A stretch of 64,000 nucleotides of DNA from Macrostomum lignano (Eukaryota). Every line of letters begins with the position of its first letter. The first letter of the stretch is position 1. Below, piece after piece: positions 10,180 through 21,446 of the stretch. The position numbers and the translations under genes were made by a program. The notes beneath the pieces were generated by a model. It saw nothing but the letters and a program-made list of their open reading frames with translations. It did not search any database and had not been told where the DNA came from. The stretch is taken from NCBI GenBank assembly GCA_002269645.1, contig NIVC01000637.1, positions 101,866 to 165,865 on the forward strand, given 5' to 3'.

Positions 10180-13100
10180 CTAACCGAATTCCGCAACAAC
10201 ACTGCGGCAAACTCCCACAATGGGAGAATAATTTCTCGCATCGCCGTAGTTGAAAGGCCGGGCGACTTCCACAATCTGCCAGATACTGCGGTCCTTCTTC
10301 AGCAGGCAGACGATAAGGCCGCGGTAGCCACAGAATCGGCTGAAGTTCAAGGTGCTCTCGGACAGACTCTGGGTAGGCCGGGCGCTGTCGTAGAACTCGA
10401 GCGTCGGCATCCGGAAGCCCTGCATGCTGGACCGACGCCAGGCGCTCATCAGGAACAGCAGGTGAGTCACTGGCTGGCCTCGCACCACCAGATTGTCCAG
10501 GTTCTGCACCCACACCTGACGGGCAAGGTGTGACATGCGATTGCAATCAATAACAAGTAGAATTGGAACGACCATTCTTCTATAGTCTAGTTTGTAGTTG
10601 TTTATAAATCCGGCCGAATCAGCCCGTCACAGCCTGTCAGAGTGTCGAAATGACATTTTTATACCCAAGATGCTAGTTTATCAGTACAGTACAATCGGAG
10701 TTTCTCTTAAAAAGAGGGCCGTCAAGATGCGACAAGTTGTCGGTAGGTGACTTTGAGTGACCTTGAACCTTACGCATAAAGACAAACTCACATTGAATGT
10801 CGATGTGCTACGCTGCCTAAGAATGTCCCTGGTTGCATTGCCGCAGTGCTGGATATAGTTGGCATAACACGTGTACCTATACGCCTGCTGCGGCCAGGTG
10901 GAGCGGAAGTCTATATTGTCTAGGTGAATGATGTGGTCTCCCACTTTGGAGAAGGTGATGCAGGCCGTATCCAGGTAATTCTTTGGATTGTTTTCCGGCC
11001 AGCCCCAGGACATGGAGAAGCGAATCTTGTTCAGGTCGCTGGGCACTTCGTACAGCACGCGGATGGCTCTGAGGCCGGTGCAGCCGCTGGCGATGCCCAG
11101 ATCAGCGAGTGTCCGGTGGTCTCCCTGCGGTTGGTGCAGCAGTGGGACAAAGAAATTGATGAAATAAGACCGTTAGAAGAATGGTGGACTGTCAAGCCCA
11201 GGGCTGGGGTGCAGGGAGGAGAACAGATGCACTGGTGAGGTGCAGGGAGGAGAACAGATGCACTCGTGAGGTGCAGGGAGGGGAACAAATGCACTGGTGA
11301 GGTGCAGGGAGGGGAACAGATGCACTGGTGAGGTGCAGAGGGGAACAGATGCACTGGTGAGGTGCAGAGGGGAACAGATGCACTGGTGAGGTGCAGGGGG
11401 GAACAGATGCACTGGTGAGGTGCAGAGGGGAACAAATGCACTGGTGAGGTGCAGAGGGGAACAGATGCACTGGTGAGGTGCAGAGGGGAACAAATGCACT
11501 GGTGAGGTGCAGGGGGAACAGATGCACTGGTGAGGTGCAGAGGGGAACAAATGCACTGGTGAGGTGCAGAGGGGAACAGATGCACTGGTGAGGTGCAGAG
11601 GGGAACAAATGCACTGGTGAGGTGCAGAGGGGAACAGATGCACTGGTGAGGTGCAGAGGGGAACAAATGCACTGGTGAGGTGCAGAGGGGAACAGATGCA
11701 CTGGTGAGGTGCAGAGGGGAACAGATGCACTGGTGAGGTGCAGAGGGGAACAGATGCACTGGTGAGGTGCAGAGGGGAACAGATGCGCTGGTGAGGTGCA
11801 GAGATCACTGGTGAGATGTGCACAGGCTGAAGCAGTGAATGCTCACCTCGAGTGATGTCCCGCCCATGAGGATTTTGATCTCGCGCACCGGCGGCCTGTC
11901 ATCCATTTTCTGCTGCAATTTCAGCTTGAAGGCATTGAGGGAGTCCAGACTCTGGGCGCTGATGATGGCCGTGTCGCCTGACATGAAGCTGACGGACAGG
12001 TTGAGCGGGATTGAAACCAGCTGCGATACTGCAACCTGCGGCTGGGACACTGTGGGTGGGAAACGCAGCAAGCTGGAGACAGTCTTGCGCTCTGAAGGAC
12101 TGCAAAAGTAAACCGAATATTGATACCTCAGCATCAATATCCCATCTCTGATACCTCAGCATCAATATCCCATCTCTGATACCTCAGCATCAAAATCCCA
12201 TCCCTGATACCTCAGCATCAATATCCCATCTCTGATACCTCAGCATCAATATCCCATCCCTGATACCTCAGCATCAATATCCCATCCCTGATACCTCAGC
12301 ATCAGTATCCCATCCCTGATACCTCAGCATCAATATCCCATCCCTGATACCTCAGCATCAATATCCCATCTCTGATACCTCAGCATCAAAATCCCATCCC
12401 TGATACCTCAGCATCAATATCCCATCTCTGATACCTCAGCATCAATATCCCATCCCTGATACCTCAGCATCAATATCCCATCCCTGATACCTCAGCATCA
12501 ATATCCCATCTCTGATACCTCAGCATCAAAATCCCATCCCTGATACCTCAGCATCAGTATCACATCCCTGATACCTCAGCATCAATATCCCATCCCTGAT
12601 ACCTCAGCATCAATATCCCATCCCTGATACCTCAGCATCAATATCCCATCCCTGATACCTCAGCATCAATATCCCATCCCTGATACCTCAGCATCAATAT
12701 CCCATCCCTGATACCTCAGCATCAATATCCCATCCCTGATACCAGGTACCTCAGCATCAATATCCCATCCCTGATACCTCAGCATCAATATCCCATCCCT
12801 GATACCTCAGCATCAATATCCCATCTCTGATACCTCAGCATCAAAATCCCATCCCTGATACCTCAGCATCAATATCCCATCCCTGATACCTCAGCATCGA
12901 TATCCCATCCCTGATACCTCAGCATCAATATCCCATCCCTGATACCTCAGCATCAATATCCCATCCCTGATACCTCAGCATCCATATCCCATCCTTGATA
13001 CTCCAGCATCAGTATCCCATCCCTGATACCTCAGCTTCAATATCCCATCCCTGATACCTCAGCATCAATATCCCATCCCTGATACCTTAGCATCAATATC

Positions 13101-13745
13101 CCATCGCTGATAACTCAGCATCAATATCCCATCCCTGATACTCCAGCATCAATATCCCATCCTTGATACTCCAGCATCAATATCCCATCCTTGATACTCC
13201 AGCATCAATATCCCATCCCTGATACTCCAGCACCAATATCCCATCCCTGATACCTCAGCATCGATATCCCATCCCTGATACTTTGGTCTGAGACTCCAGT
13301 GGTATTTAACGAAACTCCAACCTCATTGCAGAGTCCTTCAGCATCCACACTGCATCAGCTTACCGGACACCTCCTTGTCCCTGTAGTCATAGACAACGCT
13401 CTCCAGTTGCAGTCTGTAGATGGCGGCGCTCTCTGAGTCCGGCTCCACCTCGCCATCGCACTGGCTGTATGGGCAGACACCTTCCGAGTCCACAGACTTC
13501 AAGCAGCACTATGGAAATTGTGCACCAACAGTTCATATTTAGATACTCGTACAGGCATGCAAGTTTAAATGAATAATCATTTTCATTTAGTCAAAATTCA
13601 AACCCGAATGCAGATCTGCAGCAGCGGATGGTGACATGCGTCAGTCAGTGGCTCCAGTGGATATTCATTTGATGGTTTGTCAATGCAGCAGCTGCTGCAC
13701 TTCATTGTCCAATTTGCATGCATTAGAATGCCATTTTGTCACTGG
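10180..13745 (-). CDS. RING finger + ubiquitin-like + TerD-like domain protein; exons 13745-13604, 13508-13364, 12091-11847, 11124-10792, 10515-10180
   Basis: All junctions are GT-AG with matching phase. RING: CSSC...CHH...CIRC...CPYSQC. UBL: LNLSVSFMSGDTAIISAQSLDSLNAFKLKLQQK...IKILMGGTSLEGDHRTLADLGI. TerD-like: KIRFSMSWGW...YLDTAC...IQHCGN...VTHLLFLMSAW...LIVCLLKK...WQIV...GDARNY. In-frame TGA at 13741-13739; next ATG at 13723 (392 aa). Confidence 0.8.
11210..11810. repeat. 29-bp intronic minisatellite (GCACTGGTGAGGTGCAGAGGGGAACAGAT)n, about 20 copies
   Basis: Direct reading. Confidence 0.95.
12118..13280. repeat. 28-bp intronic minisatellite (GATACCTCAGCATCAATATCCCATCCCT)n, about 41 copies
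   Basis: Direct reading. Confidence 0.96.
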
Positions 13746-14541
13746 CTAAACTTATTCAAAAACCAAAACTTGTATTTACTATTTAAAAAGTAGCTTTCAA
13801 AACATTGTTGCATCAATAGAATTTGATTAATAAGCATGCTTTGATATACATATAATAATTTTTTTTAAACTGTCATGAGAGAGTTATGAGTCCTAGGTCC
13901 TAGATAGAAGATGCAAGACTCTTAGACATTTTGGTGGCTATAGGAAAATTTTAGCATATATTTATTATGCCTTTGCTAAGTATTTTTTAAAATAAATATG
14001 TGATCTTTTACAAGGGGAAAAGTAAATTTAACCTTTGATATTCCTTAGATAAGTCCTTAATACTAAATAGATATTAAATAATAATATTATTACAATGCCA
14101 CAAAAGCAACTATACTTTTTTCTTTTCTTATTATATTAATATTGATTTTTAGAATAAATTTATTTAGTATATTAGCTATTTATCTGTGTGATATCTATTC
14201 AATATGATTTGATATCATTTAATTCTTTGGTTTAAAACCAATGTTTAATATATTTATACAGTTAATTCTATATGATAGACTAGAAAAAAATTATGCATGT
14301 TTTAAGAAATAATATATACAAATGCAGAAACTATCAGTTTATTATATTAATTTTAACTTCTACTAGCATTTTTATTTGGACACTAGTGTCCAACTATAGT
14401 TATAGATATAGAAACATATTAAATAAAAAACGAAATAAATGATTTGATTTTTTATCTATAACTAATTAAAATTTAATTCATAAAAAGTAAAAAGCCTGAA
14501 AAACCACATTTAGTGCAAACAAGAAAAAGAAAGATTAAGTA

Positions 14542-14894
14542 CTGGGTTTTTTAGGCCATACAGTAGCCACTGGCTACCCAAAAAAGCCATTGGCAACTGG
14601 ATTTGTGCCATCAGAGGCCAATCTGGCAACCAACTTGAACCAAGGCAGTTGCCAATGATAAAACAGTCTGTCACATTTTATTACTACTAAGATTGGCTTG
14701 GCTGAAAACCTGAAGCCTGAGCTGATTCAAGCATATTCTTTTTTTATCAATGTGTGAAAATTGTGCTTCGCATATGATTTTTGCTATGCACAGGCACTGG
14801 GACACTGAAATAGGTCAGTTGCCAGTTGGCAACTGAGGATGGCAATTGGCAACTAAATTTTGAGTGGCAACTGGATTTTGGACAAAAAACCCAG
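14542..14894. mobile_element. MITE, 353 bp, 11-bp TIR, 8-bp TSD
   Basis: CTGGGTTTTTT...AAAAAACCCAG flanked by ATTAAGTA on both sides (14534-14541, 14895-14902); internal TTGGCAACT/AGTTGCCAA motifs. Confidence 0.8.
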
Positions 14895-17387
14895 ATTAAG
14901 TATACAACCAAGAATTGATAAGGTACGAGTAATAAAGGAAAGACTAAACAAAGATATAAGGCAACCAAACTAAAGAAATGATTTAGAAATTTGAAATAGG
15001 ATAAAAATTAGAAATAAATAAAACTGGTTTTTACACATTTTAAACATTATAAGCACCAGTGTTGCCACTACAACAACCAAAGAAATTATTGCAGGATAAG
15101 AAAAAAATTGCAGGAACAAATTTCTTATTTGTCATAGAAAAAAGGGTGCCAGTATATGAAAAAAAAATTATTTTAAGCTTTCCATTTTTAATTCCATTTT
15201 CTATTTGACCAAAAAGAACTACTACAATTTGCAATAACTGTATACAACTCTCATTTACGCCAAATCAGTGAAGTAGTCATACAACACAAGCATTTTATTA
15301 AGGGAAGACAGGCATATATATAATATAGATTACTGTTGTTCATTATGGAACTGACCCAAGAAACCAACTAAAATACAGGATGCCACAATTGCTGATGAGT
15401 AATAACAATTTTACAACTAAATTTCATGCTATATTCAAGTTGTCTGAATCTGTTCTCAATTCTATATATCTGAAATGAATTCTTTTAATATTTTAATTGT
15501 TGATCAATGTTGGTAACTATATGGGAAGAAATACTTTTATGTGAATCTTTGTTTGGCTAGTCAAACGTTAGTCAGGCAAAACTGCAGGCTCTTCAGTGGA
15601 TGTTAATTTTTTCTTTGGAACCTTTGGCAGAACAGATCAAGCGCCGAACTCTGCCTGTCTCTTTTGCTGAGCCGTTTTGTCAGCAGCTTTCTTCAGTGCT
15701 CGCTTGACTGCAGCATGCTCAATCTCCTTTTGCCAAGCTTCAAAACTGGAGGCTTGCACAGCCTCACGCTATATTGATGACATTCATGACACTCAAATTG
15801 AGCACAAAATGAAACACAGTACTTGATAAAAACTTGAAAGGACTTATATCCACAAAAGAATCATATGAAACAAGCATAGGCCCTAATGGATAAAATTATT
15901 GCTGAGCAATTAAAAATTGCTGAATGATGAAAAATCGCAGTGGTGGCAACACTGATAGGCACTTTAAATTTATAAAAATGTCTAAAAAGGCATAAAAAGG
16001 GTTATAATCATTCAATCAACTAAACTAAAGAATATAAAAAGATCATAAATGTTTTTACACAACATTGCCTAGTCTCCTAACAATTTTCTAGGTCTCTTTT
16101 AAAGAGAAAAATGGCAGCTGCCTTACACTTTTTTCAACTATGGCCTTAAATGACATTTTCTCGATTCTGTTATCTAATTATTAGAATTAGGCCTAGTCAT
16201 TAGATAATTTCATTTCTCTTCTTGGATACTGAAAATCAATCATAATTAACCTATTAAACTAGTTACTTGTCCGTTTTTATAAACAAATTAGACTCTCTTA
16301 GCTACTAGGTCTACTGAAAGGCTTAAAAATCGTGTACAGACAACTGAATTTTTCTTTTATAGTTTCACTCAAAGGTCATAATTCTAAGTATAAATTAGGA
16401 TTCCAATAAGTGAAAAATTAACATCCTTAGAACACAAAATTACATACAATAACACTTTGATCTATTTAACTTCGTTCTTATAACTAGAAAGAGCAAGAAA
16501 CTGAGGTTCTTAAAAATGACGATCGATCACCATTTGATCAATCATGCGTGGCAGTGAGCTCGATCATGTATTTTTTAAAGTCAAGTTCGAAAATTAAATC
16601 GCGAAAACGAAAAGCGAAAATCTTTGAAGAACTAAAAAAATAATGGCTTAGCACCTTTTAAATGTAATATAAAACAAAAAGCTTAGCTTTCATATTAAAT
16701 AGTCACGAAATTCGTGGTCTATTAGTATAGTGCATAGCTACTTTGTTATAATCGATAGTTTCGTTACTTTTAAATTAAATAGTACAAAATGAACGGAATT
16801 ACACTACTGTAATTTTCAGCTAAGCTCGCTAAGGTATCTATGATGCCGTAATTCGGAAAGACAAATTTTTATCAATATCGACCAACAACCGCATACATGT
16901 ACTTGAGCAGAAGGATGGTAACATGACACTAGCTGTGTACACGTAACATCAGAAGATAATTACTTTTTAAAGTCTGGCTTTCCGAGAAAAATTGCCTTAC
17001 CGCAGGAAATCTTCACTCTCTCAACACAGAAAAGCAATAGTTGTTTACAGCAGAGTTTTAATACTCGTATCTTAATTTGAATCGTCCTTGCTTTTCTTGC
17101 GACTCTCTAAGGCTTACAATTCAATTAACCTCTAAGTCTTCAGGATCCTATGCAAAGTTGGATAATAGAAACGTGATATTCTATTGTCTTTCGTCCTAGA
17201 CGGGCTCAATGCGGCTGGGGATGAGGAAGCGTAGGTCCCAGAGCTCTCCTCTTTCATAGTGCACATCTTACAGGGACTTAGAATATTACAGCTGCTATGA
17301 TTATTTTGTTGGAGATACCACCGATACTGTCGGTGATAATTGGTACTTTGATCCTCAGCTTCTATTTCATGCTATACTGCGACAGGC

Positions 17388-17827
17388 GGTTTACCCCCGA
17401 CTCGCCGAATCCCGATTTGCCGATTCCCATCTCGATTTGCCGATTTTGCTTGTTTCATTCACTCTACTATTTCTTAGTGACTTACTAATACTAATACTCA
17501 AGAAATAATAGAGTAAATGATAGCAAGCAAAAATGTACACAAGGTTCGAACAAAGAATGGCTTATCTATTAGCTAGCACAGGCCACAGGCATTACCAGAG
17601 ATTCGACGTAGTACGAATTGACCTAATAGTGAATTCGCCGAGTCGGGAATTCGGCGAATCAGGAAATCGGCAAGTCGGGATTCGGCAAATGAGGAATTTC
17701 GGCAAATCAGGAATTTCGGCAAATCGGGAATAGGCGACTCGGGAATTTCGGCGAACCAGGAATCGGCGAATCAGGATTCGGCGAGATGGGAATCGGCAAA
17801 TCGGGATTCGGCGAATCGGGGTAAACC
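17388..17827. mobile_element. MITE, 440 bp, about 47-bp TIR starting GGTTTACCCC, 8-bp TSD (Merlin/MULE-like ends)
   Basis: TSD CGACAGGC at 17380-17387 and 17828-17835; TIR includes CGCCGAATCCCGATTTGCCGATTCCCATCTCG. Confidence 0.85.
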
Positions 17828-19081
17828 CGACAGGCGCACTGTCTACTCACACTTCATGCCACGTACAGTTCATGACAAATAAGAAAATAGGCAGAAACAG
17901 ACAAAGATTTGAATGGCTAATGCCCTGAATTTCCTGCCCTGCAAGCCGCACTAAAATACAAATAATTCGGTTAATTATTTACGTGAAACGGATTGAGAAT
18001 GAATTTATTAGAAAACGGTGAGCAAAAGGAGGTGAAGACCTGACTGGAAATACCCAGACAGCGCAAAGGAGGAAGAAACCTTAGCAGACACGGCTGACGG
18101 GCAGGGCTGCTTGGCGCGGTGGTCGTCGGGTGGTCACGGTAGCGGCTGCAGTCATGGATGAGCCAGGCGGAGGTCGCAATGATGGGGAAGTGGAAGACAA
18201 GTTAGCGGATGTCTAACTAGCGGAAGATCCTGAGGATCTATGAGCAATCAAGTGTTTAGGGGAATCTAGCTTGATTAACTTAGGACTGAGATCACGCGTC
18301 AGGCGATCACGTGAGCGTGAAGCGTGATATTGAAGGCCGTGACTTGTCCTTGACCTCCGTTACCAAGCAACCCTGATGACGTCACCCGCGCTGTGATTGG
18401 ACGAGAAATTTGGCGGTCGCAGAGGCGGGAAAAAGCTTGAGAGATAGGGAGTCATCATGAGACTGACATCCTAATGATCCCAATGAGTCATCCTGGGGCA
18501 CAGGTATCACAGGGGAGGAAGGCAGGATGCGCAAAAATTAGTGGGAGGCGCAGGACGTCCCTACATCAGACTATACAGTCCAACTTGAATTATTTCCTTT
18601 GTGGCCACGCATGTGGATTGAAATTGGAATTTATCCACCTGCATATACACAATAATTCAAAGCATATACTTTCGAAACGGAGCTCCTGGATTGCGTATTA
18701 AAGATAAATTCTTCTACAAATTAGAAAAGTTGGAGAACAGGAGCTAATAAAATTTCTCCCTGCCAGAGCGCTGCAGAAGTAGCTGTTCCATGTCCACTAG
18801 CTATAAGCCAAATGGAATCAGAAAGAACTGGTAATGTACAAGACGCTGGAATATCGTGTACTTTCGACAAAAATAGACAGTCTCACTTTGCCGATGCGAT
18901 TGTCGAAGCACGAGGTGGAGGTGTGTCACCTACACAGGTGTTCAACAAATTTTCTATCGCCATTTCAACCATACGGCTTATACTGTGTATTATTTCGCAT
19001 AATTTAGAAGCGTCAAGTCTCGCAGTGAGTCGTTCAAAAGTTTCTGCCTGCTTGCCGCTGCTCTCTCTTTTGCACGCTCAC

Positions 19082-21446
19082 TCCAGCTTGTTCGTCCACA
19101 CCGGAGGCACATAGCAGAAATTCTTGTAGCTATCGGGGCACCTCCTGTGCTTGGAGCTCAGCCCTGCAAGTTGTGTTTGAGACTGACTGACTGACTGACT
19201 GACTGACTGACTGACTGACTGACTGACTGACTGACTGACTGACTGACTGACTGACTGACTGACTGACTGACTGACTGACTGACTGACTGACTGACTGACT
19301 GACTGACTGACTGACTGACTGACTGACTGACTGACTGACTGACTGACTGACTGACTGACTGACTGACTGACTGACTGACTGACTGACTGACTGACTGACT
19401 GACTGACTGACTGACTGACTGACTGACTGACTGACTGACTGACTGACTGACTGACTGACTGACTGACTGACTGACTGACTGACTGACTGACTGACTGACT
19501 GACTGACTGACTGACTGACTGACTGACTGACTGACTGACTGACTGACTGACTGACTGACTGACTGACTGACTGACTGACTGACTGACTGACTGACTGACT
19601 GACTGACTGACTGACTGACTGACTGACTGACTGAATTGAGTGAGTGGGTGACTGACTGACTGACTGACTGACTTGAGTGAGTGGGTGACTGACTGACTGA
19701 CTGACTGACTGACTGACTGACTGACTGACTGACTGACTGACTGACTGACTGACTGACTGACTGACTGACTGACTGACTGACTGAATTGAGTGAGTGGGTG
19801 ACTGACTGACTGACTGACTGACTTGAGTGAGTGGGTGACTGACTGACTGACTGACTGACTGACTGACTGACTGACTGACTGACTGACTGACTGACTGACT
19901 GACTGACTGACTGACTGACTGACTGACTGACTGACTGACTGACTGACTGACTGACTGACTGACTGACTGACTGACTGACTGACTGACTGACTGACTGACT
20001 GACTGACTGACTGACTGACTGACTGACTGACTGACTGACTGACTGACTGACTGACTGACTGACTGACTGACTGACTGACTGACTGACTGACTGACTGACT
20101 GACTGACTGACTGACTGACTGACTGACTGACTGACTGACTGACTGACTGACTGACTGACTGACTGACTGACTGACTGACTGACTGACTGACTGACTGACT
20201 GACTGACTGACTGACTGACTGACTGACTGACTGACTGACTGACTGACTGACTGACTGACTGACTGACTGACTGACTTACTAAAGAAGGCCGCGTAGTCTT
20301 TGTACGCGCTGACGGCGATCATCAGGCAGTTCTCGAACTGCTTGGCGCCCAACTCCTCGTGGTCCATCAGAGCCTCGCTGACGTTGCGCAGCAGGGTTCG
20401 CGACGGGACGTTCACGCAGAGGGGCTCGCTGGTTCCGCTCATGTCTATGATTAGGAACAGCTGAGAGTTGTGCCGGTTGAAGGGAAAGAAGAACCTGTAC
20501 ACCTGACTGTACATGATGGACAAGTAAAACTTGTGCTTGAAGTCCCACATAAAGTCGCTCGCTCGTGGTAGTGGAATAGTCACCTGAACCCTATAGGGCA
20601 TATTATGGGCAAGTCGTTGTGGGTAAATATGCGGCCTGCTACTCGAAAACTTCCTGTATTGCTGATTCCCTCACGGCTACTATGAAAAGTAACTCACTTC
20701 AAAACCACATTATTCGCAGCTGTCTCAACTCTACAGACACCTCACTCCAGAGCCACCTTACTCCGCAGCCACCTCACTCCAGAGCCAACTCTCTCTACAG
20801 CCACCTCACTCCACAGCTACCTCACTCCACAACCACCTCACTCCACAACCACCTCACTCCACAGCCACCTCACTCCACAGCCACCTCACTTCACAGCTAC
20901 CTCACTCCACAACCACCTCACTCCGCAGCCACCTCACTCCACAGCCACCTCACTTCACAGCTACCTCACTCCACAACCACCTCACTCCGCAGCCACCTCA
21001 CTCCACAGCCACCTCACTTCACAGCTACCTCACTCCACAACCACCTCACTCCACAACCACCTCACTCCACAGCCACCTCACTTCACAGCTACCTCACTCA
21101 CCGCTATCTCAACTCCAAAGCCACCTTACTCTGCAGCCAACCTTAGCACATATACTTACTCAAACGGATAGAAGAGTGTGTCGGAGCTGACAAACTTCCT
21201 AAGGTTGACCCGGGCCAGTCGGACATCCGTGTTCAGCCTCACCAGGGGGCCCAAGTTGGGGAAGTTCGGCATCGTGTGCACATTGTAGCCGCTGATGAAC
21301 AGATCATACTGATGGTCGGCTGACGAGGAGACGGTCTGGGATTGGCTTATGAACTGGGTACTCGGCTGCTTCAGCTGCATTTGCATCTGCTGAGCAAGTA
21401 GGGATGGTTTCTCCTCCTGAGGTGCTGTGTCGCTATCGATCTCCAT
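19082..21446 (-). CDS. Upstream exons (21446-21160, 20590-20280, 19163-19082) of unknown function, probably the 5' part of the RING-UBL-TerD locus
   Basis: ATG at 21446; junctions GA|GTAAGT to TATAG|G, A|GTAAGT to TTGCAG|GG, and GA|GTGAGC are all phase-consistent; GC3-rich codons. No family recognised. Confidence 0.7.
19187..20277. repeat. (GACT)n microsatellite, about 1.1 kb, filling an intron
   Basis: Direct reading; an interruption block is duplicated at about 19634-19687 and 19783-19836. Confidence 0.98.
20740..21100. repeat. 16-bp intronic repeat (CACCTCACTCCACAGC)n
   Basis: Direct reading. Confidence 0.93.

Follow-up and report, generated by a model that had tools for sequence, protein, structure and literature searches.

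The window, a stretch of 64,000 nucleotides of Macrostomum lignano contig NIVC01000637.1, contains two loci in tandem orientation on the minus strand, both of which are already deposited in GenBank as separate hypothetical proteins. The GenBank CDS range of the first, gene 1 (Mlig018571g3), corresponds to window positions 21446-19078. The second, gene 2 (Mlig027339g2), codes for a protein with RING, ubiquitin-like (UBL) and TerD domains. In the direction of transcription, the features are as follows.

21160..21446, minus strand: gene 1 coding exon 1 with its ATG at 21446 (227-aa product; translation P0010; from the GenBank CDS range)
20280..20590, minus strand: gene 1 coding exon 2, with the IIDMSGTS motif; splice sites tatag/GG and TA/gtaagt
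19078..19163, minus strand: gene 1 last coding exon, with the terminal TGA at 19080-19078, kept in 3/3 copies
13746..19077, minus strand: non-coding spacer of 5.3 kb (gene 1 3' UTR and intergenic DNA), with no ORF of at least 101 aa wholly inside it and a MITE-like element at 17378-17838
13706..13745, minus strand: gene 2 5' leader, running from AG 13747-13746 as far as the start codon of family type; holds TGA 13741-13739 and ATG 13723
13604..13705, minus strand: gene 2 coding exon 1, with ATG 13705 (MKCSSCC...) placed by the family alignment
13364..13508, minus strand: gene 2 exon 2, second half of the RING; the acceptor at 13508 gives a C-x2-C ligand pair (ICIRCC)
11847..12091, minus strand: gene 2 exon 3, linker and first part of the UBL; acceptor 12091 as in the preliminary description, versus an inner one at 12049 in the annotated models
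10792..11124, minus strand: gene 2 exon 4, end of the UBL and first half of TerD
10180..10515, minus strand: gene 2 exon 5, second half of TerD, with the stop TAG at 10182-10180

A preliminary description of this DNA had linked the two blocks into one chain of eight exons (21446-21160, 20590-20280, 19163-19082, 13745-13604, 13508-13364, 12091-11847, 11124-10792 and 10515-10180), and its elements are indeed present. The donor GA/GTGAGC at 19082/19081 and the acceptor TTTAG/C at 13746/13745 occur on the minus strand, and the chain amounts to 1881 nt in one frame with a terminal TAG and one internal stop at codon 229. This stop is TGA 13741-13739 in the context CAG-TGA-CAA, with an ATG downstream of it at 13723. 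The join from 19082 to 13745 is itself hypothetical. The GT of the "donor" (19081-19080) combines the final G of GAG with the first base, T, of the gene 1 stop codon (GAG-TGA-GCG); hence, the unspliced ORF, which ends in GAG-TGA, terminates at the same place (227 aa as against 228 aa). The agreement in frame is likewise unsurprising because one donor-like GT and one AG match in phase with a probability of 1/3, and the compatibility of the two blocks is no more than expected by chance. GTGAG is a consensus M. lignano donor (PMC8629364) and TTTAG/C is usable as an acceptor, so rare splicing from 19082 to 13745 may occur.

The gene pair, the gene 1 stop and the leader TGA are all retained in all three genomic copies, one in the window and the others L001 and L004; both stops are thus real and conserved. 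The L001 paralog is 94% identical to the window and shares with it at least 3.4 kb of the spacer, copy-specific insertions and deletions apart. It differs at the codon before the leader TGA, which there reads CAA-TGA, indicating that the copies are not mere duplicates of one read set. One might suppose a single long gene whose TGA is a sequencing error or marks a null (nonsense) allele, a reading that has nothing in its favor beyond the frame coincidence and whose probability is close to nil, as the TGA recurs in three independently assembled contigs. For the assembly, both a base-call error and a copy-specific nonsense allele, as the preliminary description had entertained, are therefore refuted. 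Exon 3 of L004 has lost 1 nt, which places the two blocks out of frame. The annotated CDS of this copy (frameshifted product P0009) passes the "donor" by 88 nt unspliced, running straight through GTGAGCG..., and is hence a transcript model without splicing at this point. The three copies are too alike for a substitution pattern to be read in the segment after the TGA, and a 73%-identical relative is represented by Logan transcript L003, in which the RING exons are missing and which is uninformative on the TGA.

The public annotations keep the two blocks apart. On the window contig, GenBank has PAA79389 (227 aa, ending in ...NKLE) and PAA79388 (371 aa, partial) as separate entries, and older UniProt/WormBase-type models agree, with 222-aa proteins ending in NKLE and 372-aa proteins starting with MKC. 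The gene 2 GenBank CDSs in the three copies are 5'-partial, with their first base at 13714 or 13702, i.e. 3' of the TGA. No gene model links the blocks in the three copies or the two public annotation sets; the gene identifiers are absent from paper texts and from the PMC5816591 supplements. The preliminary description had held that separate genes would follow if no transcript joined the blocks, and the absence of one, as judged from these two annotation sets together with the comparative evidence, refutes its single-gene reading.

We consider it very probable that these are two independent tandem protein-coding genes rather than one, and the locus, already annotated as two genes, is an ordinary one. 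Gene 1 (21446-19078, three coding exons) would specify a lineage-specific 227-aa protein ending at TGA 19080-19078, the GTGAG that was read as a donor being its stop codon plus flanking bases. After some 5.3 kb of non-coding, repeat-bearing DNA, gene 2 would be translated from ATG 13705 into a stand-alone E3-ligase-like protein of 372 aa with C3HC4 RING, UBL and TerD domains. Depending on where the mRNA starts, TGA 13741-13739 would lie in the gene 2 5' leader, in an outron or in the promoter, and would never be decoded. The gene 2 mRNA's 5' end could be set by its own promoter, by spliced-leader addition at TTTAG/C or by a 5'-UTR intron. Separate genes or trans-splicing had been among the options of the preliminary description, and a downstream gene with its own ATG, trans-spliced or not, fits all the evidence, except that the start at 13705 is favored over the proposed one at 13723.

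This preference rests on the family to which gene 2 belongs. The RING-UBL-TerD assignment made in the preliminary description is correct, with all three domains recovered by both profile and fold (AF2 model of pLDDT 89). The RING is of the C3HC4 type, with invariant ligands C2, C5, C23, H25, C31, C34, C45 and C50 across 34 aligned sequences and the spacing C-x2-C ... C-x-H ... C-x2-C ... C-x(2-4)-C, which needs the exon-2 acceptor at 13508. The family profile of the UBL matches ubiquitin chains (E about 1e-15 per domain), whereas the single gene 2 sequence alone gives a weak match; in Foldseek, the UBL aligns to ubiquitin with a TM of 0.88. A profile of the C-terminal region matches the TerD structures 3IBZ (E=2.5e-11) and 2KXT (E=3.2e-11), and the leading Foldseek matches include TerD structures (TM 0.63). 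A HMMER search with the gene 2 protein against 1.84 billion representatives recovered 76 matches at E<=1e-10, and RING-UBL-TerD proteins constitute an uncharacterized and phylogenetically wide family in animals and glomeromycete fungi.

The N-terminus of this family lies at the RING. About 35 full-length relatives align their residue 2-3 to query residue 1-2 in the HMMER search, thus starting with M-x-C, and proteins with this start (at least 35 representatives) span chordates, echinoderms, molluscs and fungi. In alignment A1, >90% of the rows have a Met in the column immediately preceding the first RING Cys. The stand-alone M-x-C start is hence widespread and probably the ancestral state. In the window, ATG 13705 is followed by AAG TGC, which yields just such a start; it has an A at -3, as against a C in the weaker context of ATG 13723, and lies about 11-13 codons from the TGA, with ATG 13723 at seven codons. 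From this alignment, we predict that gene 2 starts at ATG 13705 (MKC), not at 13723. As the family start matches an ATG situated 3' of TGA 13741-13739, the latter is an upstream in-frame stop in the 5' leader. An in-frame stop shortly 5' of the initiator ATG is the usual sign of a complete 5' end, and the older paralog Mlig002613 has an in-frame TAG three codons 5' of its own ATG.

The same evidence bears on the proposal of a single gene with a 5.3-kb intron from 19082 to 13745, whose UGA would be partly read through to give products of 228 aa and 626 aa. Compatible frames, good splice dinucleotides and the C after the UGA are in line with it, as is the existence in bivalves of a fused architecture with an N-terminal domain ahead of RING-UBL-TerD. 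However, every point made above for two genes counts against it, as does the L004 deletion, which breaks the frame between the blocks, and no family member has residues matching QNGILMHANWT, the codons from the TGA to ATG 13705. The context is UGA-CAA-AAU; UGA-CUAG is absent and there is no RNA structure, shuffled versions folding as well as the 102 nt from the stop (z=-0.25). An mRNA in which four introns come after this stop would, as a rule, be a target of nonsense-mediated decay. Programmed animal UGA readthrough of the UGA-CUAG type and the viral UAG-CAA-UUA type resemble the locus only in a UGA followed by C and by a CAA codon. Unlike programmed readthrough genes, the M. lignano locus lacks a continuous transcript model, CUAG, a 3' structure and a conserved extension, and has a canonical start codon just 3' of the stop. 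With no linking gene model, a family N-terminus at the RING, and neither motif nor RNA structure, the 626-aa readthrough product is unsupported and readthrough is highly improbable.

Another possibility is that the two genes form a dicistronic unit whose transcription starts at the gene 1 promoter and whose precursor is resolved by polyadenylation of gene 1 and by the 35-nt spliced leader being added at TTTAG/C (13746/13745). About 30% of M. lignano genes are trans-spliced, and operons exist, some with repeat-inflated spacers (PMC8629364; PMC5730564). Both genes are on one strand, they stay adjacent in three copies, and an AG lies 40 nt 5' of the start codon. Operons have been delimited by a repeat-adjusted intergenic distance of <1 kb, with a mode of ~100 bp (PMC8629364). 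The spacer, transposons included, measures 5.3 kb, with 3.4 kb or more of it common to the 94%-identical paralog; this raw length is far over the threshold, though the repeat-adjusted distance may be shorter. Further, GTTTAG departs from YTNCAG, the motif enriched at trans-acceptors; with its terminal AUG joined to CCAGTG..., the spliced leader would create an out-of-frame uORF of 22 codons across both candidate starts; the annotated mRNA models begin 3' of 13745; and no such neighbor exists at the locus of the older paralog. We accordingly regard the operon as unlikely. In such a unit too, TGA 13741-13739 would still be untranslated 5' UTR. Separately, TAATGCATG, found just 5' of annotated transcript starts, was considered as a relic of, or confusion with, the spliced-leader 3' end (TTGCATG) and rejected, its local alignment to the leader being no better than 27-55% of shuffles; that it is a trimming artefact is speculation.

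The product of gene 1 has no relatives outside M. lignano in the PDB, NCBIfam or a word search of 5.8 billion proteins. Older models of it are named "VWFA domain-containing" in UniProt, and it carries a D-x-S-G-T motif, after which only ~90 residues remain, too few for a vWA domain. No significant vWA match was obtained (hhalign probability 0.14%, P=0.42; hmmsearch -2.7 bits; nothing by blastp); in the best hhalign placement, which is non-significant, residues 140-196 fall on the initial strand-helix-strand of vWA_4. A gene 1 AF2 model built without an alignment had a pLDDT of 34 and was discarded as unusable.

Bivalves do code for vWA_4-RING-UBL-TerD proteins, as in Potamilus streckersoni (KAK3606152, 592 aa) and Mercenaria (XP_053391520), while Ruditapes philippinarum JAKTTH010009820 has colinear vWA_4 and RING-UBL-TerD exons, with a neighbor that has Pfam PF02342 on record. 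These fusions resemble the architecture imagined in the preliminary description, with an N-terminal module 5' of RING-UBL-TerD on the same strand; but the bivalve module is a clear vWA (PF00092/PF25106), whereas the gene 1 protein is not detectably one. The RING exon has its own Met in Mercenaria and lacks it in Potamilus and Ruditapes. In M. lignano, in contrast, gene 1 ends at its own TGA, 5.3 kb away, and the Met of the RING exon is preceded by an in-frame stop.

It is conceivable that an ancestral vWA-RING-UBL-TerD gene was split in Macrostomum, with gene 1 as a truncated and diverged vWA still tied to the E3. The UniProt name, the motif and the hhalign placement would fit, along with the colinearity of the modules in the three bivalves and TerY, a vWA protein, which Anantharaman et al. 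are said to have described in 2012 as accompanying TerD in bacterial ter clusters. Weighing against such a fission are the non-significance of the vWA similarity (the hmmsearch score being negative), the shortness of the segment past the motif, the absence of decayed vWA exons from the spacer and the whole window (tblastn, and every stop-to-stop fragment scanned with the vWA_4 HMM), the widespread and probably ancestral stand-alone start, and the unusable gene 1 model; we judge it quite unlikely. The same low expectation attaches to the pair being a diverged remnant of a vWA and RING-UBL-TerD partnership, kept adjacent and perhaps cotranscribed and resolved by the spliced leader, with the frame coincidence as a fossil. 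Were there a fission, adjacency would have been kept because the two proteins work together, echoing the bacterial TerY-TerD association.

Under the favored reading of two genes, the locus exemplifies neither readthrough nor reinitiation, nor a bicistronic mRNA. It offers two cautions for sequence-only scans: stops of the form G-TGA-G or G-TAA-G mimic the consensus splice donor, and an in-frame stop just 5' of an ATG signals a true start, not a broken ORF. The broader interest lies in the RING-UBL-TerD family and its vWA fusion in bivalves, which tie a bacterial stress/defence domain to the ubiquitin system. The C-terminal 200 aa of gene 2 resemble bacterial TerD of the ter stress-response cluster (Klebsiella 2KXT, Streptomyces 3IBZ/2QZ7), with the E value and TM given above; unlike these, gene 2 is eukaryotic and its TerD is fused to ubiquitin-system domains. 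Anantharaman, Iyer and Aravind reportedly noted in 2012 that Ter components were recruited to the ubiquitin system in some eukaryotes. The stand-alone relatives, from marine invertebrates and glomeromycete fungi and all named "uncharacterized", include Branchiostoma floridae LOC118414582, Patiria miniata LOC119723498, Gigantopelta aegis LOC121378819 and M. lignano Mlig002613. They share the domain order, the eight invariant RING ligands, a length of 330-390 aa and a start one residue before the first Cys, and the TerD motifs W-G-Y-P and Y-L-D-A-S-C are conserved in them and in gene 2. Unlike these relatives, M. lignano Mlig027339/019645 have a degenerate version (HCGNATRD) of the H-S-G-D...G-H-H segment, the counterpart of the Ca2+-binding loop in bacterial TerD (2KXT).

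The locus is two ordinary neighboring genes, both already annotated: Mlig018571g3 upstream and the RING-UBL-TerD gene Mlig027339g2 downstream. Their exon blocks are separate genes in two independent annotations, the transcript-guided Mlig_3_7 set in GenBank and an older set in UniProt, and the two conceptual products match only M. lignano entries in protein searches, with 95-99% identity. The GenBank upstream protein P0010/PAA79389 (CDS 21446-19078, NIVC01000637.1) is exactly the unspliced 227-aa ORF, as is its paralog P0004, and the annotated upstream proteins end in NKLE. The annotated downstream proteins either start with MKCSSCC or are 5'-partial from 13714 or 13702, with every start lying downstream of the TGA from which the preliminary description had derived a readthrough or bicistronic reading. 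Because the downstream CDSs carry a 5'-partial flag, the annotated starts need not mark the true mRNA 5' end. In the Mlig_3_7 pipeline, transcripts are cut where spliced-leader and poly(A) signals map (PMC5730564). The 5'-partial CDSs start directly after ...GCATG or ...AATG, which hints that the annotation pipeline may have trimmed a spliced-leader suffix.

Both genes and all the features under discussion lie on the minus strand, and the elements from which an eight-exon gene had been assembled are present as described; they are listed here together with the upstream gene's own stop and the family-type ATG:

19082/19081, minus strand: supposed donor, GA|GTGAGC
19080-19078, minus strand: in-frame stop TGA of the upstream gene
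13746/13745, minus strand: supposed acceptor, TTTAG|C
13741-13739, minus strand: TGA in the context CAG-TGA-CAA
13723, minus strand: ATG, first candidate start
13705, minus strand: ATG of the family type in ACA ATG AAG TGC, with A at -3, 11 codons past the TGA

With the second downstream-block exon taken from 13508, the eight exons do form a single frame of 1881 nt, whose sole internal stop is codon 229. At the end of the last upstream exon the sequence is ...AAG CTG GAG TGA GCG, and the GT of the supposed donor consists of the G of GAG and the T of the upstream gene's own stop. Without splicing, the upstream ORF has 227 aa and the C-terminus ...WTNKLE; the sole change in the spliced version is a C-terminus of ...KLDQ as against ...KLE. 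The 19082-13745 join is unnecessary to explain the end of the upstream ORF. The M. lignano donor consensus is GT[G/A]AG (PMC8629364), which an ORF ending in G-TGA-G resembles. Since such an end mimics a donor, and a given AG fits the donor phase with a chance of 1/3, the single interrupting stop is without statistical weight.

Two further copies of the whole region occur in the assembly (Mlig_3_7, GCA_002269645.1), L001 (NIVC01000636.1, ~94% identical) and L004 (NIVC01001494.1, near-identical), while the window matches its own locus, L002, with 100% identity across 15.7 kb. The order and orientation of the gene pair are the same in each copy, and 3/3 copies keep GAG-TGA, the natural stop, as well as the TGA of the leader, whose context in L001 is CAA-TGA-CAA versus CAG-TGA-CAA. 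Because all three genomic copies carry both TGAs, the earlier suggestions of a base-call error or of a nonsense allele confined to a single copy are ruled out. In L004, one nucleotide is deleted from a C-run of the last upstream exon at ~12070 (window ~19125), which puts the upstream and downstream blocks out of frame in that copy; this frameshift reflects either decay of the copy or an assembly error at the homopolymer. The annotated L004 product, P0009 (256 aa), is frameshifted, and its CDS continues into GTGAGCGTGC... and reaches a TAA after 88 nt. Hence, this transcript-based gene model is unspliced at the proposed donor, and, with both annotation sets keeping the blocks apart, the reading as a single gene is not supported.

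With the downstream protein minus its Met as query, HMMER was run on 1.84 billion representative proteins and recovered 273 relatives at E<=0.001, of which 76 reach E<=1e-10; those named include proteins from Branchiostoma, Patiria, Gigantopelta, bivalves and glomeromycete fungi and the older M. lignano paralog Mlig002613. In about 35 full-length representatives, residue 2-3 is aligned with query residue 1-2, so that these proteins begin with M-x-C, the C being the first RING cysteine. Across an alignment of 34 sequences, Met is conserved at >90% in its column and the eight Cys/His ligands are invariant. The window's start of this type is ATG 13705, while ATG 13723 stands in a weaker context and adds six residues without a counterpart in the family. 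Mlig002613 has an in-frame TAG three codons 5' of its ATG. Since ATG 13705 matches the family's start at the RING and the older paralog also has an in-frame stop, the downstream gene is complete on its own, with the TGA as an ordinary upstream stop delimiting a complete ORF. The TGA most probably sits in the 5' untranslated leader of the downstream gene. A 10-mer, TAATGCATGC, occurs just 5' of the start codon both at window 13718-13727 and at ~9960-9970 of L005, the locus of Mlig002613 (35% identical); the likeness of the TAATGCATGC region to the spliced leader is not statistically significant. The Mlig002613 family comprises two tandem RING-UBL-TerD genes of 388 and 389 aa (L005 10001-17977), and lies downstream of another gene, whose 5070-aa product has AAA_5 hits and is truncated by the end of the locus.

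Readthrough of the 13741-13739 stop is not supported either. Its context is UGA-C, yet not the metazoan UGA-CUAG motif; the 102 nt counted from the stop are no more stably folded than shuffled sequence (z=-0.25); and the residues that readthrough would add are found in no relative in the family alignment. An mRNA with a stop followed by four introns would normally be exposed to nonsense-mediated decay, and eukaryotic ribosomes reinitiate inefficiently once they have translated an ORF of 228 codons.

Another reading is cotranscription of the two genes, with trans-splicing of the downstream message. The M. lignano leader CGGTCTCTTACTGCGAAGACTCAATTTATTGCATG, 35 nt long and ending in AUG, is added to ~30% of genes, and operon partners lie <1 kb apart after repeat subtraction, with a mode of ~100 bp (PMC8629364). 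Here the raw spacer is 5.3 kb, of which at least 3.4 kb is common to the 94% paralog; the acceptor is GTTTAG rather than the enriched trans-acceptor motif YTNCAG (PMC8629364); and the leader AUG joined to CCAGTG... would create a 22-codon out-of-frame uORF spanning both candidate starts. No Mlig018571-like neighbor is found at the older paralog locus. Cotranscription is thus unlikely, and even under it the TGA would be untranslated. A MITE-like element of the spacer (17378-17838, ~460 bp) is bounded by terminal inverted repeats of 57 nt, 88% complementary, and contains subrepeats of the CCGAATCCCGATTTGCCGA type; it is missing from L001, where its flanks meet at 12809/12814. A GC-richer block at 18300-18420, conserved in the paralog, clusters CCAATCAC, the CRE-like TGACGTCA and CACGTGA; the block resembles a promoter and may go with an unannotated transcript or with a 5'-UTR exon of the downstream gene.

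The RING-UBL-TerD assignment of the preliminary description was correct by both profile and fold. Ubiquitin is matched by the family profile at ~1e-15 per domain, and a profile built on the last 200 residues hits the TerD structures 3IBZ (2.5e-11) and 2KXT (3.2e-11). The AF2 model built from the alignment (mean pLDDT 89) has its best Foldseek matches in the TerD-family structures 2QZ7, 2KXT and 2QNG (target TM ~0.63) and in ubiquitin (TM ~0.88). By analogy with RING E3 ligases, the protein probably acts as a ubiquitin ligase, with the TerD domain as a putative sensor of a ligand or Ca2+. Its exon 3 has two usable acceptors, 12049 and 12091 (ttcag|AGCGCA and ccacag|TGTCCC), 42 nt apart, so that the choice between them adds or removes the 14 aa ERKTVSSLLRFPPT within the linker, disordered, from RING to UBL; the annotations take the inner one.

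Two relatives have N-terminal extensions: Potamilus P0016 (KAK3606152, 592 aa), with a full vWA domain before the RING, and Mercenaria P0027 (XP_053391520), with the end of one. This vWA is of the PF00092/PF25106 (vWA_4) type, usually found as a separate small protein. In Ruditapes philippinarum (L006 10007-14509), vWA exons, two RING exons, the first without a Met, and UBL-TerD exons are colinear on one strand within 4.5 kb, divided between two models. Given these extensions and the colinear Ruditapes exons with their Met-less first RING exon, a genuine vWA-RING-UBL-TerD fusion exists in bivalves, a eukaryotic echo of the bacterial association of TerY (vWA) with TerD. This raises the possibility that the flatworm upstream protein is a diverged relic of an earlier partner or fused protein; older models of it are labeled 'VWFA domain-containing' in UniProt, and it bears an IIDMSGTS motif. 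Against vWA, hhalign picked this motif without significance (P=0.42), the vWA_4 HMM gave the protein a negative score and found nothing else in the window, and blastp returned no match. Only ~90 residues follow the motif, and the AF2 model of the protein was unusable. Such an origin is very improbable.

Repeats take up several introns of the two genes. Intron 2 of the upstream gene (19181-20280) is almost wholly (GACT)n, in ~274 copies, and is stop-free in the exon frame; hence, a mechanical 507-aa ORF with SVSQ repeats extends from exon 2 across the intron as far as the stop. Three further introns (20728-21139, 12121-13281 and 11216-11803) are filled with minisatellites of periods 16, 28 and 29 nt in 20-41 copies.
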